Positions 40,420-46,643 of a stretch of 64,000 nt of DNA are shown here, piece by piece. Within the stretch, counting starts at the first letter, position 1, and each line of letters begins with the position of its first letter. A program made the position numbers and the translations under genes. The notes under the pieces are model-generated. The model did no database searches and had not been told where the DNA came from. It worked only from the letters and a program-made list of their open reading frames with translations. Source of the stretch: Pecten maximus (taxonomy: Eukaryota); assembly GCF_902652985.1 (NCBI RefSeq), contig NC_047019.1, positions 40,486,001 through 40,550,000 on the forward strand, written 5' to 3'.

Positions 40420-42122
40420 GAATTAGATATTCAGTTCACAAGACACATATTAAAGTCGGAAAATCAAGGTCAAGGTTATTAGTTCCAAATGTCAAGGTCA
40501 AATTTTGTATCTTTTCACTTATTATTTTGTTATTCCTAAAGTAATCGGGTAAAAGATCAATATCAAATTATGTATCTTTCCACTATTGAAGATTTTGTTA
40601 CAACATGGGCAAAATTAAACGAGGAGTCAGCTCACCAAAGGTCAAGGTTAAATGTATCTTTCACTAATTAACATTATAACTTGCATGGTCCTTTGTGCCA
40701 AGTGAGCTTTATGCTGTGGTGTGGACTTGGTCATCCATCTTGCATCCATTATTGCATCGCCTGCAAAAAGCATTCAACATGTATAAGTATTGCTATGTCG
40801 GCAGCATCGTCTGTACAGTTTTCTGTGCGTTAACTTCAGTTCCCTTGGGCCAATCAAACTCGAATTCCCTTGGGCCAATCAAACTCAAATTTCATGCAGA
40901 TCTTCCCTACCAAAAATGCTTGCTTGGGACTGCTTTTAGCTTACTAAAAATACAAAATTTGTTTCCATGCAGTAACTCGAGTGCCCTTGGGCCCATCAGA
41001 TTCAATTTTCATGCAGTTTTTCCTTTCCCCAAGTGTTTTTTTCACTGGTGGAAAGGTCAAGGTGGCATATCAAACAATTTCTATGCAGTTTTTAGCCCAC
41101 CATCTTATGACTTTCAAATCGCTGTGCAAGGAATACTCTTAAAACTTTATGTGAAGGTTCCACATTTGTCTCTTAATTGTGCCAATTGAATTTTGAATTT
41201 CAATAGGAGAAACAAAAGGCCAACATGCAGCAATCTTGGAATTGTTATCGCTACTTAAAGTACAGAAGGGGTGTTTCTAAACTTAACATATAGGTTCCAC
41301 ATGTTCATGTTATCAGATTACTCGGGGGGGGGGGGGGAAACAGAAGAGAGAAGAGTCTGACAGAATCAATAGAGATCGTTCAGGGGTGGGCACCAAGATC
41401 TCTTTCCTTACCACAAGTGTTTTTTACTGGTCCAATGGTGAATAGGTCAAGGTCACTTACAAAAACTAGAAATTGGTTTGTGATAACTCGGAAGTTCCAT
41501 TTGGTTCAAATTGCTACTAGTAAAAAAATTCTTGTTGGATTTTGACCAATAGGGGAAATAGTGGTAATTCCTTTAAGTCGCTACTAGTCATAAGGTTATG
41601 AATGCATGTTGTAAACTTGGAGAGTCTTGACTTCATTATTTCTTTAAAGCAGTTGGGATCCCCACACTATAACCATATATACAACAATGTAGCATTGTTT
41701 GAGGTTAACAAAGAAAAAGAATTGAACATGAACATTATTTTGACATTTGGTCAAATCCAACCAGGTGAGTGATACAGGCCCCATGGGCCTCTTGTTCCTT
41801 GCCAAAAGATGATCTTTACTGGTCCAAATGTCAAGGTCACTAATAATAAATAGAAAATCTGTTTCCGTGCAATAACTCTTGTAATCGCCCTACTTTGGCG
41901 CAGGTGACACATCCACTTCTTTTTCCATTTGTAAACATCTTATATTTGGCTGATAGGTTCCTAGGATGGATTCCCAAATTCAAAGTCGCATGGGTCTTGT
42001 TTATCAAAATATTCAAACAACTCCTCACAAACTGTAGATTCAAGCTTTGACTAAATGAAAGGCAGAGAAATAGCAAACCAGTGAGAACCAGGTGAGCCAT
42101 GCAGACTCACTGGGCCTCTTGC
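40420..42122 (+). mobile_element. Cluster of degraded HINE-like elements
   Basis: Multiple TCAAGGTCA cores and termini CCAGGTGAGTGATACAGGCCCCATGGGCCTCTTGTT (~41761-41797) and CCAGGTGAGCC...GGGCCTCTTG (~42088-42121). Confidence 0.5.
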
Positions 42123-43350
42123 TTATGGTGTTGTGAAGAACAGCTGATCAGAATTGTTGAACAAGTCAACTAACTGGAGTAAATATTAACCAAGTTTGAT
42201 GAAACTAATGTAGCCATATAACAACATCTCGTGACCAGTTTGAAAATGGGAATTATTCACAGAGTTATTGCCCTTTGTAATAATATTATTAACAATGTTT
42301 TAGCTAACCTTGCCCTAAAGGTCTTGATGCTTTATTGAGCAAAGGAGATCTAGTATATAAATTGAGGAAAATCCTTAAAATCCCTACGACATGTAGTTCT
42401 GATTTAATTTGGTCTGGAGAAATTTTGGGCAATGGAAACCCCTGAGCCCAATAGGGGAAATTGAGGTAAGTAAACCTACTACTGGGGCATTATTTGGCAA
42501 ATAAGATGTTGTATAAATGAAGGATGTGGCACTCTTGGGGTAGGAGAAAGGGTGCCCAATCGGGGAAATTTAGCAAGAAAAACCCCCAAAAAACCTTTAA
42601 AAATACTTTTTTATGAATGAAAGGATTAAGTCCCCTGTTAAGTTTGAATCATTGTTGGGAGAGGCATTTCGAAAGCAGGATGTAGCTGAAATATCCAGTT
42701 GAGCGATGCAGGGCCTCTTGTATAAGGTATAATTTGCTTCCTTGCAATTGTCTTTGATTTTCAAATGTCTGGTATCAATGTCATGTTCTTGGATACAAAA
42801 AAAGTTTGGTTTGGTTTGGCTTGGCATTAATGTCCTATTAAATGCTATGGTCATTTAAGGGTGGCCTCTCCTGTGTGAATGCATGTGTAACAAAGCGTAG
42901 AATAAATTAAATTTAAATCACTGTCTCTGCTAGGGATCGGACGTGGGACCTCTGGCTTACTAGTCTTACGCTCAACCGATTGAGCTAAAGAGAAGATCTC
43001 TCTAGCTGAGCGGTATATTGCAGCTAGTATTTACCAGGGTTACATACTCCCCCTCCAGGAAAGAGCTCGTCCTCGAGTTTCCAGGGGTAACAGCGATGCT
43101 TTCGCAAGCAGCGATGAGTATCATTCCCGAGTCCCTACATGGGCGCCAATGTAACAAAGCGCAGGATAGATATAATTCAAATCACTGCCTCCGCTAGGGA
43201 TCGAACCCAGGACCTCTGGCTTAATAGTCTTGTGCTCAACCGATTGAGCTAAAGAGAAGATCTCTAGCCGAGCGGTATATTGCGGCTGATATTTACCAGG
43301 GTTACATACTCCCCCTCCAGGAATTAAGAGCTCATCCTCGAGTTTCCAGG

Positions 43351-44512
43351 TGTAGCACAGTGTTTGTTTGCTATAGTATAATGCAATACATTGTGTTAAT
43401 CCGCTAATCCGCGCTCCGCATCGTTGGCGCTCAGAATCTTGTTAAATTATGTATGTTCCTACGATCCGCACTCCGTACCGCTGTACACGCGATGTCACGT
43501 GATTGCTACTTTCGTTTTAGCTATGTAAGTTATTGTGTGATGTAATGTTTGTGTATCTGTCAATCATGTTGTCTCGTGACTGGACTGACTGACCACGGAC
43601 ACCTCATGCGTCATGACTTGGGCGCATTTCTTTTCCCGCCGTCTTCCCTTCTTTCTTTCTCTCGACTCTCTCTCTACCGCACTTCTCAGCCAGACGTGGA
43701 GCTGTCCACATCTACGGTCTCTGGCCATGGTTACGAAACCACTATAGCTATCCTATTTTGTCTGCACTTTGTGCCGGGTCCCCAGCACCATATGCAGGGT
43801 GAGTACACTGAGTACAGCTAGTGATATTTTGTTAATTATTGCTATTATATTCTATAGGATTTTTATATATTTTATATCAAATAATGCCGTATCGGTTATT
43901 ATTGTACTTTCTAATAATTCTGGGCCGAAGCTAGATATAGTTTCAGTACATTCCATAGCCAGTTTATATATATATTCCTAACTATCCTTATTAGCTAGAC
44001 CAGTTAATATATATTGCTAAACCGGGTAATAATTCAGCCAGTGTGCGCGGGTATGTAAGTCCGTGTGAAAGCTACGCTAGTGTTTTGTATGTGTGTATTG
44101 TCTATAAGTCAGGTGCGTTCGTGTACGAAGTTCGTTTATATATATTTATATTTTTAACATTGCAGGGACCATATTTGATATTAATAAAAGTAACAGAACC
44201 GACGAACGTTTTGGTCATGTCATCATTGCAAAAGAACCCTAACACCACATTGGCGCCCATGTAGGGACCCGGGGGAAATACTCAGGATTGCTCCACAAGC
44301 ATCGCTGTAACTCCTGGAAACTCGAGGACGAGTGCTATCCTGGAGGGGGAGTATGTAACCCTGGTAAATACTAGCCGCAATATACCGCTCGGCTAGAGAG
44401 ATCTTCTCTTTAGCTCGATCGGTTGAGCGTAAGACTAGTAAGCCAGAGGTCCCGGGTTCGATCCCTAGCGGAGGCAGTGATTTAAATTTAATTAATCATG
44501 TGCTCTGTTACA
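43351..44512 (+). mobile_element. Chimeric LTR element: 899-bp foreign 5' LTR + PBS + TRIM internal region + PPT + 159-bp tRNA-containing 3' LTR, 4-bp TSD CAGG
   Basis: TGTAGC...CCACA at 43351-44249 with AATAAA at 44183. PBS TGGCGCCCATGTAGGGAC at 44251-44268. PPT GGAGGGGGAGTA at 44342-44353. LTR at 44354-44512. CAGG at 43347-43350 and 44513-44516. The host internal sequence (CCAGG|GGTAACAGCGATGCTT) resumes exactly after the TSD. Confidence 0.88.
44404..44476 (+). other. tRNA-Thr(AGT)-like sequence inside the TRIM LTR (Pol III type-2 promoter; not a functional tRNA)
   Basis: A box TAGCTCGATCGG at 44411-44422, anticodon loop CT-AGT-AA at 44435-44441, B box GGTTCGATCCC at 44455-44465. The anticodon stem does not pair well. 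Confidence 0.75.
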
Positions 44513-45987
44513 CAGGGGTAACAGCGATGCTTCCTCCGCTAGGGATCGAACCCATGACCTCTGGCTTACTAGTCTTGCTCAACTGATCGAGCTAAAGAGA
44601 AGATCTCTCTAGCCGAGCGGTATATTGTGGCTAGTATTTACCAGGTTACACATGTAGTTTATGTGTGTTTTGGGAGGCTGTAATATATTTGTTTTGTGAT
44701 ACCGTGAAACTTGACAGTTATGGGTCATATATATATCACGATGGGGGCGCTTGCTGACCTGTTCATGTTCGAGTTCAGTTTGCTTTAAATACAAAATTTT
44801 AAATCGGGTAAAGTCAAGGATGCTACACTGCCGTCACTGTACTCTGCTTCTGACAAAAATACACAAAATATATCACATGTATAGAAATATATCGAACACC
44901 ATCACTAGCAAATGAAAAATAAGAAAAGATTGATAGTTCCATACAAAATGTAGCGGTGGAGCAAACTTTACTTCTTCAAGATGTAATTATTTATCCACTA
45001 AATTTAAACAAAATCTTTTTAGAGACTTAAACTTTTGGATATATACATGTACAAGGTAATCATGTAACTTGTTCAATCATAGCTCTTTGTCTGAGATGTA
45101 CATAAGTCAGAACAGTCTGTAAGTCATTCCTACTGTACATGTGGTATAGAAGGGTACCGTAATAAAGTCGGGTCTTGAAATTTTTATGCTGCGTCCTGTC
45201 CCGTCCTGATGCAATGTAACTAAATAATCTCAGGAACTGCTGATGCTATCCTAACCAAACTGTGTTTTGGGATGTCAAGTGGCAGCGGGGGCATTTAGTT
45301 CTAGTTTCTAGTTCAGTTCTGTGAGACAATATGAAAACAAAGGGGCAAACAATTTCAACATTTTATTTAAAATATACAAAGCTAGACTTCACAGTAATTA
45401 AATGACAATTGACAAAAAAAATAAATACAAGTAATAAAAAATATTTTACTAGTAACTTGATGCAATCTGCCCACCTTTTATGTATTTTAGGAAAAGTTCA
45501 CTTTCAAAGTACTGTTATGATACAACTCGAGACACCGTCTTAGAATGTTCAACAGATAACTAATTCAATACTTGTATGGGTAAAAACCAATTTTCAACCA
45601 AGTCATTTTTAGTATGAAATCCACATACAACAAGTTGTAGAATTCTTATACACAACAAAATGCAAGATGTCAACTAAGATCTATGCAAATAAACAACCAA
45701 CATCATAACAATGAATGTGATCAAACCTTCTCATTCAAGGTAAATTAAATAACATACTTGGTAAAAATGTAAAAAAAAAAAACATCTTGCACTCCTCATC
45801 ATAATAATAACATGAACTTACATACATATATACATATTTAACAATTAAAACGTTATTTAAATCAAAATTTCATATAAATCAGTAACTGCAGGTGAAGTTA
45901 GTCTTTAATTACGATACCAGTAGAGACTATACACAAGATGAAATGAATGTACTACATTTGTAGTAATTTACTACCTACCCATAGTAA

Positions 45988-46245
45988 CAGAGGGTTTCTA
46001 CATGCACAATTTAAACATAACAGTTTGAGGGTTTCTGGATAGATGAACATGCACAGTCCTTGATTTAAACATTAACAGTGTGATGGTTTCTGGATATATG
46101 AACATGCACAGTCCTTGATTTAAACATTAACAGTGTGAGGGTTTCTGGATAGATAACCATACACAGTCCTTCAATTTTAACATTAACACTGTTGGTAGGG
46201 TTTCTGGATAGAAGAACATTACATAGTCCTTCAATTTAAACATAT
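45988..46245. repeat. Degenerate ~55-60-bp tandem repeat (4-5 copies) in the probable 3' UTR of the CPRAS1-like gene
   Basis: GGGTTTCTGGATAGATGAACATGCACAGTCCTTGATTTAAACATTAACAGTGTGA. Confidence 0.8.
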
Positions 46246-46643
46246 ACAATATCACAGTTTGGTTATGGTCACAAGTACAGAAAACATTAATGAAAAAAAC
46301 ATATGCTTTACATTTTCTGACAGCGTACCAACAAGGAATTCAAGAATTGGATCAAAGATGCGAGTTGTCTTTATAGTGAGTTTAGGCAAGAATTACTGTT
46401 CAAGGCCAGTCAACTCTAAATTAAAAAAAAATCTTTTTCTGACCCAGAGCAAAATATCCTATTGGTATCTTAACCAATCAGCCTTTCATAGGTTGTCCTT
46501 GTCTTGATAAGTTTATTTAGCAAGACAAATTTAGATTTAAATAGCAAAAATGCACATTAAAAGTGAAGCACTATAAATCCAGGAAGCTAGTTTGTTTGCT
46601 GCCTAATCTTCCAGGTTTACATCAACGTCAACAGTTTGGAATG

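Follow-up and report, generated by a model that had tools for sequence, protein, structure and literature searches.

A hybrid of a Gypsy-type long terminal repeat and a Helenus-type miniature retrotransposon in Pecten maximus, probably joined at a common primer binding site

The hybrid element and its insertion site

We analyzed a 64,000-nt stretch of the Pecten maximus genome (G000:C5:40486001-40550000; hereafter the window), which holds a retroelement with two different long terminal repeats (LTRs). Coordinates are those of the window unless they carry a contig label such as C8, and genome-wide searches covered the 918-Mb genome. The element spans 1162 bp (43351-44512) and consists of an 899-bp LTR, a single T, an 18-nt primer binding site (PBS), the internal region and polypurine tract (PPT) of a terminal-repeat retrotransposon in miniature (TRIM), and a 159-bp tRNA-like LTR. 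Outside these parts stand the two CAGG copies of the target site duplication (TSD). An earlier, sequence-only reading of the window had proposed such a hetero-LTR structure, and every part that it listed was recovered in place, to the base:

43347-43350, plus strand: left TSD copy CAGG, placed by empty-site reconstruction within the internal region of a host TRIM (CCTG on the minus strand)
43351-44249, plus strand: 899-bp LTR of Ty3/Gypsy type (TGTAG...CCACA; "899 family"), starting with TGTAGCACAGTG and ending with CCTAACACCACA, AATAAA at 44183; identified through genome-wide copies, solo LTRs and a coding element with paired LTRs
44250, plus strand: spacer base T between LTR and PBS; likewise T in TRIMs and in the long-LTR family B described below, A in the sole full-length 899 copy
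44251-44268, plus strand: PBS TGGCGCCCATGTAGGGAC; positions 1-13 common to the 899-family element on C8, complement fitting a tRNA 3' end
44269-44341, plus strand: internal region (73 nt) of a Helenus-type TRIM, subfamily "CCCGGGG..."; canonical TRIM copies have the identical sequence after their PBS
44342-44353, plus strand: PPT GGAGGGGGAG (44342-44351) plus TA, kept in all TRIM copies compared
44354-44512, plus strand: 159-bp TRIM LTR, TGTAACC...CTGTTACA (GTTACA end), tRNA-like core at about 44404-44476
44513-44516, plus strand: right TSD copy CAGG, matching the left copy in the empty-site reconstruction

The hybrid is flanked by another TRIM, which lies on the minus strand (42886-44650), comprises three LTRs and two internal regions, and has a TSD of its own (CATG, 42882-42885 and 44651-44654). 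The insertion point is located in the first internal region of this host. Removal of 43351-44516 leaves AAGCATCGCTGTTACC-CCTG-GAAACTCGAGGA, which is identical across the junction (32/32 positions) to the second, intact internal region of the host. This exact restoration of the empty site demonstrates that the CAGG repeat is a true TSD, beyond a chance match of 1 in 256, and that all sequence between the CAGG copies entered as one DNA piece. The hybrid is thus one single-unit integration, in agreement with the sequence-only reading, which had claimed integration as one unit inside a clean TSD. Pattern searches returned a single occurrence of the hybrid LTR/PBS/TRIM junction in the genome, from which it follows that the hybrid did not amplify.

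The host TRIM is divided by the hybrid into two parts:

42886-43346, minus strand: 3' part of the host TRIM, with the rest of the first internal region, PPT, LTR, PBS, internal region, PPT and LTR
44517-44650, minus strand: 5' part of the host TRIM, with the 5' LTR lacking its 3' end, up to the insertion site; the PBS and the first half of the internal region are deleted

Before the insertion of the hybrid is considered, the host is itself a tandem element (LTR-int-LTR-int-LTR) inside one TSD, whose LTRs are mutually only ~84% alike. A deletion of ~100 bp cost it the PBS together with the 3' end of the 5' LTR and one half of the first internal region. Tandem repeats are also present near this nest of TRIMs, with a 55-bp unit repeated four or more times at 46018-46250 and a ~385-bp unit repeated three times at 41019-41860.

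Parents of the two halves and their primer site

The 899-bp block was found elsewhere in the genome as a solo LTR, and flank reading revealed 4-bp TSDs for five copies (tcaa, gaaa, ctat, caat, and tttg); a nested insertion of 4.6 kb divides the copy with the TSD caat. It also forms the paired LTRs of an element at C8:26773837-26793647 (TSD gcta), the only full copy of the family that pattern searches of the whole genome detected. In this element, the 5' LTR ends in ...CCACA, after which A + TGGCGCCCATGTA provides the PBS start found in the TRIM as well, and a G-rich PPT (...caacaggggggtgtt) is located just before the 3' LTR. Its frames, broken up by nested DNA transposons, encode, in this order, a PNMA-like gag, RVT_1 (3e-38), and rve. 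Neither RVT_2 nor BEL-type domains were seen among the domain matches of this element and of family B. Judged by domain content and order, the 899-bp block is the true LTR of a Ty3/Gypsy-type family. Two claims of the sequence-only reading are thereby borne out, namely that the block serves as an LTR elsewhere (five solo LTRs with 4-bp TSDs and the paired LTRs of a gag-RT-integrase element; RT, reverse transcriptase) and that its parent carries the PBS of the TRIM. The C8 element measures ~19.8 kb because of its nested DNA transposons, which are represented by a piggyBac-like DDE_Tnp_1_7 frame and by a second frame, of 651 aa, whose DDE match is weak.

The LTR of the hybrid shares 87-92% identity with full-length copies and 96-98% with a deleted variant, and this divergence from its relatives indicates that the hybridization event is not recent. 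The 899 family is old and rare, with one degraded full copy, and is one of several partners of the TRIM. We also considered the 899-bp block as a long variant of the TRIM LTR, which was rejected because no repeat links the two and the block has a coding element of its own. A solo 899 LTR beside a truncated TRIM was likewise rejected, because the sequences bordering the 899 LTR, CAGG on its left and TTGG on its right, do not form a TSD.

The other half of the hybrid fits the published Helenus/TRIMp3 group, i.e., elements having short LTRs with a tRNA-like core, a tRNA-complementary PBS, a PPT, and, in animals, 4-bp TSDs (Kojima 2024, PMC10886601). Helenus is reported from pteriomorph bivalves, including Pectinida (PMC10886601). 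In the genome, canonical TRIM copies consist of two LTRs around no more than PBS and PPT, total <1 kb, and have a 4-bp TSD; the hybrid departs from this layout by its foreign 5' LTR and its length of 1162 bp. A genome-wide census of exact matches yielded at least 169 TRIM units with a perfect 23-nt PBS/leader. Some units are only 263-265 bp apart (C2:1222616/1222879 and C7:27210179/27210442), a spacing which indicates that tandem multi-LTR TRIMs are common. Regarding the tRNA-like core, the Rfam tRNA model scored 25.7 bits (E 0.015) on the core of the neighboring copy (43186-43258, minus strand), compared to a gathering cut-off of 29, and ARAGORN called no tRNA. Motifs resembling boxes A and B (TAGCTCGATCGG and GGTTCGATCC) are visible in this LTR, and TTTT is absent throughout the TRIM part (44250-44512). 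The TRIM LTR is presumed to carry a promoter of the RNA polymerase III (Pol III) type.

The complement of the 18-nt PBS corresponds to the end of a tRNA-like sequence, GGTTCGAGTCCCTACATGGGCG, which has at least 17 exact copies in the genome (reversed control, 0). These copies are clustered at a spacing of ~1.2 kb (C400:5730-10336, C401:32108-58946, and C9:9904681-9919943) and likely represent the gene family of the primer tRNA. The end of this putative primer (...GGGCGCCA) resembles that of animal tRNA-Lys, and by analogy the primer may be Lys-like. tRNA-Lys is among the primers listed for bivalve Helenus (PMC10886601). The normal leader of family B reads T + TGGCGCCCATGT + ttgcttctg.

Comparison of the parental sequences limits the position of the crossover. 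Bases to the left of 44250 are those of the 899 LTR alone, and those from PBS position 14 onward are TRIM-specific (GGGAC vs. TGCTT in the C8 element). On this alignment, the crossover can be placed only to the 14-nt interval 44250-44263, i.e., the spacer and the shared PBS positions 1-13. The sequence-only reading had set the switch exactly at the LTR/PBS boundary; the 14-nt interval adjoins this boundary but allows no finer placement.

Related hybrids and the route of formation

A pattern search for LTR end, PBS, and TRIM showed that this TRIM body is also preceded by LTRs from other long-LTR families, at least three in number and here called B, C, and D. A two-LTR hybrid at C3:43238281 carries a 474-bp LTR of family D (TGTAGTAGGG...CTACA) and the TSD TTTG/TTTG; LTRs of this family occur as pairs 6.9 kb apart. 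Another two-LTR hybrid, at C17:10177947 (C17:10177470-10178218), starts with a 485-bp LTR of family C, whose solo copies have 4-bp TSDs. The flanks of the C17 hybrid (gttatat / ttatatag) can be read as a 6-bp repeat (ttatat) or as a TSD of 4 bp (atat) with an additional TT retained, as on an unprocessed U5 end. On C3832, an LTR of family B is joined to the TRIM body between the flanks cttg/ctag, which differ by one base, and C1732:6004 is a further case of a foreign LTR with TRIM, with an indistinct 5' boundary. The expectation of the sequence-only reading that chimeras with the same LTR/PBS junction exist in different flanks is therefore confirmed, and they involve other Gypsy-type LTR families. 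About five of 113 listed units (169 in the census of exact LTR end-N-PBS-TRIM start) have a non-TRIM LTR end, which corresponds to 4-5%.

Family B is an 8.1-kb element with LTRs of ~671-674 bp, which are ~97-99% alike between copies, and 4-bp TSDs (ttat, catc, and caag); it encodes RVT_1, RT_RNaseH_2/RT_RNaseH, and rve. Two loci join its body to the TRIM. At C2:50498947, the internal end of Gypsy B, its PPT, and its LTR are directly followed by the PBS, the TRIM body, and the TRIM LTR. The complex at C19:6350731-6355606 has three LTRs inside the TSD TGAA and comprises LTR_B, PBS, TRIM body, TRIM LTR, 20 nt of PBS region, Gypsy B from mid-RT through RNase H and integrase, PPT, and LTR_B. It looks as if minus-strand synthesis had jumped to the TRIM RNA from a point within the RT gene.

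A different kind of composite is located at C7:2483148 (C7:~2482400-2483900), where a complete LTR_B and T + TGGCGCCCA are followed by a whole inverted TRIM, all within the TSD GATA; the empty target, gtgtatgGATAtgtatatag, is seen uninterrupted in the next unit of a local tandem repeat. The same head-to-head joint occurs at C9:32497012 and C6:39368527 (C6:39368457), the latter with the 3' 86 bp of the 899 LTR. In these joints, a Gypsy LTR with its spacer and PBS positions 1-9 runs directly into either an inverted TRIM LTR or a whole inverted TRIM. The PBS core, GGCGCC, is palindromic and may let two plus strands that end in the PBS prime on each other.

In our view, the hybrid in the window is very probably a dead-end recombinant from reverse transcription in one particle that held TRIM and 899-family Gypsy RNAs, joined via the common PBS. 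Joints between Gypsy and TRIM are located at the PBS, mostly within a single TSD, which fits recombination during reverse transcription, one particle, and one integration. The RNAs of a Helenus-type TRIM and of an "899" Ty3/Gypsy element, both using the same tRNA primer, would have been enclosed in one virus-like particle. Gypsy plus-strand strong-stop DNA (U3-R-U5 and the PBS copy) would have annealed via its PBS to the TRIM minus strand, and completion of both strands would have yielded Gypsy LTR - PBS - TRIM body - TRIM LTR. As the last step, the linear DNA would have entered an older TRIM as a unit through an integrase of this group, giving rise to the 4-bp CAGG duplication. As the ends of the hybrid (TGTAG.../...GTTACA) are like the termini of all families involved, and all have 4-bp TSDs, one integrase type could take the mixed ends. 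Because the R regions of the hybrid are not related to each other, the first strand transfer should fail and no further replication would follow, and a hybrid unable to replicate fits the single-copy status. An intermolecular transfer of plus-strand strong-stop DNA would be the simplest route to the hybrid.

The closest competitor to direct transfer is a three-LTR concatemer (Gypsy LTR-body-LTR-PBS-TRIM body-TRIM LTR), formed by a minus-strand switch at the PBS and integrated with the TSD CAGG, from which recombination between the Gypsy LTRs later dropped the Gypsy body. Precursors of this kind are exemplified by C2:50498947, with the end, PPT, and LTR of Gypsy B straight on PBS-TRIM, and by the C19 complex as a Gypsy/TRIM concatemer integrated with a TSD, and solo-LTR formation is frequent in the 899 family. 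We nevertheless regard this route as unlikely, since it takes two events instead of one, the former Gypsy body left no trace, and the hybrids at C3 and C17 (and on C3832) would each need an equal secondary deletion. It also shares the main conclusion, i.e., co-packaging and PBS-guided switching. Far less probable still is a history of nested insertions, in which a TRIM inserted at CAGG, an 899 element landed within its 5' LTR or next to it, and the TRIM 5' LTR was lost by deletion, as was the remainder of the 899 element. The region is indeed a nest of elements, and the host TRIM has its internal deletion of ~100 bp; however, the deletion ends would have to fall precisely at the TSD/LTR start and at the LTR end/spacer-PBS, no second TSD surrounds the 899 LTR (CAGG left, TTGG right), and other LTR families show the identical junction at independent loci. 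We give the least credence of all to an assembly artefact, or to ectopic recombination or gene conversion between Gypsy and TRIM copies via the 13-18 nt of shared PBS, even though the surroundings are highly repetitive and short-read contigs break at every repeat edge. Such events would not explain why the 4-bp repeats match and why the host sequence is precisely restored once they are taken out, and an identity of 13-18 nt is very short for homologous recombination or a long-read mis-join. In addition, an 81-nt Logan contig from another data set (run X3, 44485-44565) crosses the right junction with 0 differences, although its 28 nt on the LTR side fall below the 31-nt threshold for junction support.

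Several points weigh against the proposed origin by transfer within one particle. Neither junction gained read-level support from the short Logan contigs examined, which stop at repeat edges, and none of those listed bridges the left junction. Plus-strand transfer is usually intramolecular in retroviruses, and the intermolecular step belongs to the rarer kind. The hybrid shares its spacer base T with TRIMs, whereas the sole full 899 copy has A; this is a single base, however, and the copy in question has only 88% identity to the LTR of the hybrid. The reciprocal hybrid (TRIM 5' LTR and Gypsy body), for which the sequence-only reading had advised a search, was sought as a two-LTR chimera for the 899 leader and for family B and was not found; there was no case for the 899 leader, and for family B the arrangement occurs only inside the C19 complex. 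Finally, a three-LTR precursor would yield an identical end product in the same TSD. The plus-strand strong-stop model of the earlier reading is thus supported as regards PBS-guided recombination of Gypsy and TRIM, while the particular step stands as the simplest only. Similarly, its proposal that the hybrid ties the TRIM to an autonomous partner holds insofar as a Gypsy coding element with the same PBS was found, but the TRIM has several partners, of which the 899 family is only one, and the young family B is more likely the current helper.

A wider version of the proposed origin is more tentative, and we consider it somewhat less probable than its opposite. Helenus RNAs would be routinely co-packaged with several Gypsy families that share the primer, and PBS-guided transfers would misfire at a percent-level frequency, leaving two-LTR hybrids, three-LTR concatemers, and head-to-head composites that are joined via the PBS core.

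Significance and comparison with known systems

Partners of TRIMs whose LTRs derive from small-RNA genes (Cassandra and Helenus) have so far been guessed from PBS similarity. For Helenus, Gypsy elements were proposed as partners on this similarity alone, and the basis of its dependence on an autonomous partner was called not understood (PMC10886601). A Gypsy LTR and a Helenus body within one TSD represent physical evidence of a common reverse transcription and integration machinery, and the sister hybrids extend this role to several Gypsy families, among them the young 8.1-kb family B. The hybrids are a set of natural cases of strand transfer guided by the PBS only. They further show an exchange route for LTRs of very different promoter type, which bears on the origin of new non-autonomous families. 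If routine co-packaging is true, they would provide a natural record of intermolecular plus-strand transfer, a direct identification of helpers for a TRIM of the Pol III type, and a working path by which LTRs and promoters are swapped between RNA polymerase II (Pol II) and Pol III retroelements. Compared to published Helenus elements, the hybrid has one Helenus LTR only, the other being the 899-bp Gypsy LTR, and chimeras are unmentioned in that paper (PMC10886601).

Template-switch complexes of LTR retrotransposons within one TSD are known from grasses (Sabot and Schulman 2007, PMC1950507). Like these complexes, the hybrid is a two-RNA recombinant integrated inside one TSD (CAGG/CAGG), and the host TRIM and the C19 complex are three-LTR forms of the same kind. 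The model of Sabot and Schulman assumes related elements, R homology, and near-identical outer LTRs (PMC1950507), whereas the outer LTRs of the hybrid are unrelated and joined through the PBS only. They measure 899 bp and 159 bp, no repeat was found between them, and the expected similarity of outer LTRs is therefore not seen. The hybrid is a PBS-joined rather than an R-joined variant of a template-switch complex.

Chimeras of non-autonomous elements are also known from plants. Jiang et al. reportedly described in 2002 chimeras of Dasheng and RIRE2, a non-autonomous/autonomous pair, and Du et al. are said to have described in 2010 "LTR swapping" between SNRE and SARE in soybean. Chimeric TRIMs with donated LTRs occur in sugar beet (PMC13570524). 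These plant chimeras and the hybrid are alike as recombinants of a non-autonomous element with another family, which are taken as a sign of shared replication machinery. The plant partners, in contrast, have LTR or internal homology and LTRs of the Pol II type, whereas the hybrid unites a tRNA-like, presumed Pol III LTR with a Gypsy LTR in an animal.

Cassandra is a TRIM bearing 5S rRNA sequence, in which multi-LTR forms and recombination between elements are frequent (Kalendar et al. 2008; Yin et al. 2014, PMC4079214). It resembles the Helenus-type TRIM in having an LTR with a presumed Pol III promoter that originates in a small-RNA gene, and differs from it by the 5S instead of tRNA origin and by its occurrence in plants. 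No autonomous partner of Cassandra is identified (PMC10886601), whereas the hybrids described here name candidates for the Helenus-type TRIM. The kind of event is known and has precedent in plants; new are the union of a presumed Pol III-type TRIM with a Gypsy LTR, the joining by the PBS only, the occurrence in an animal, and the array of by-products.

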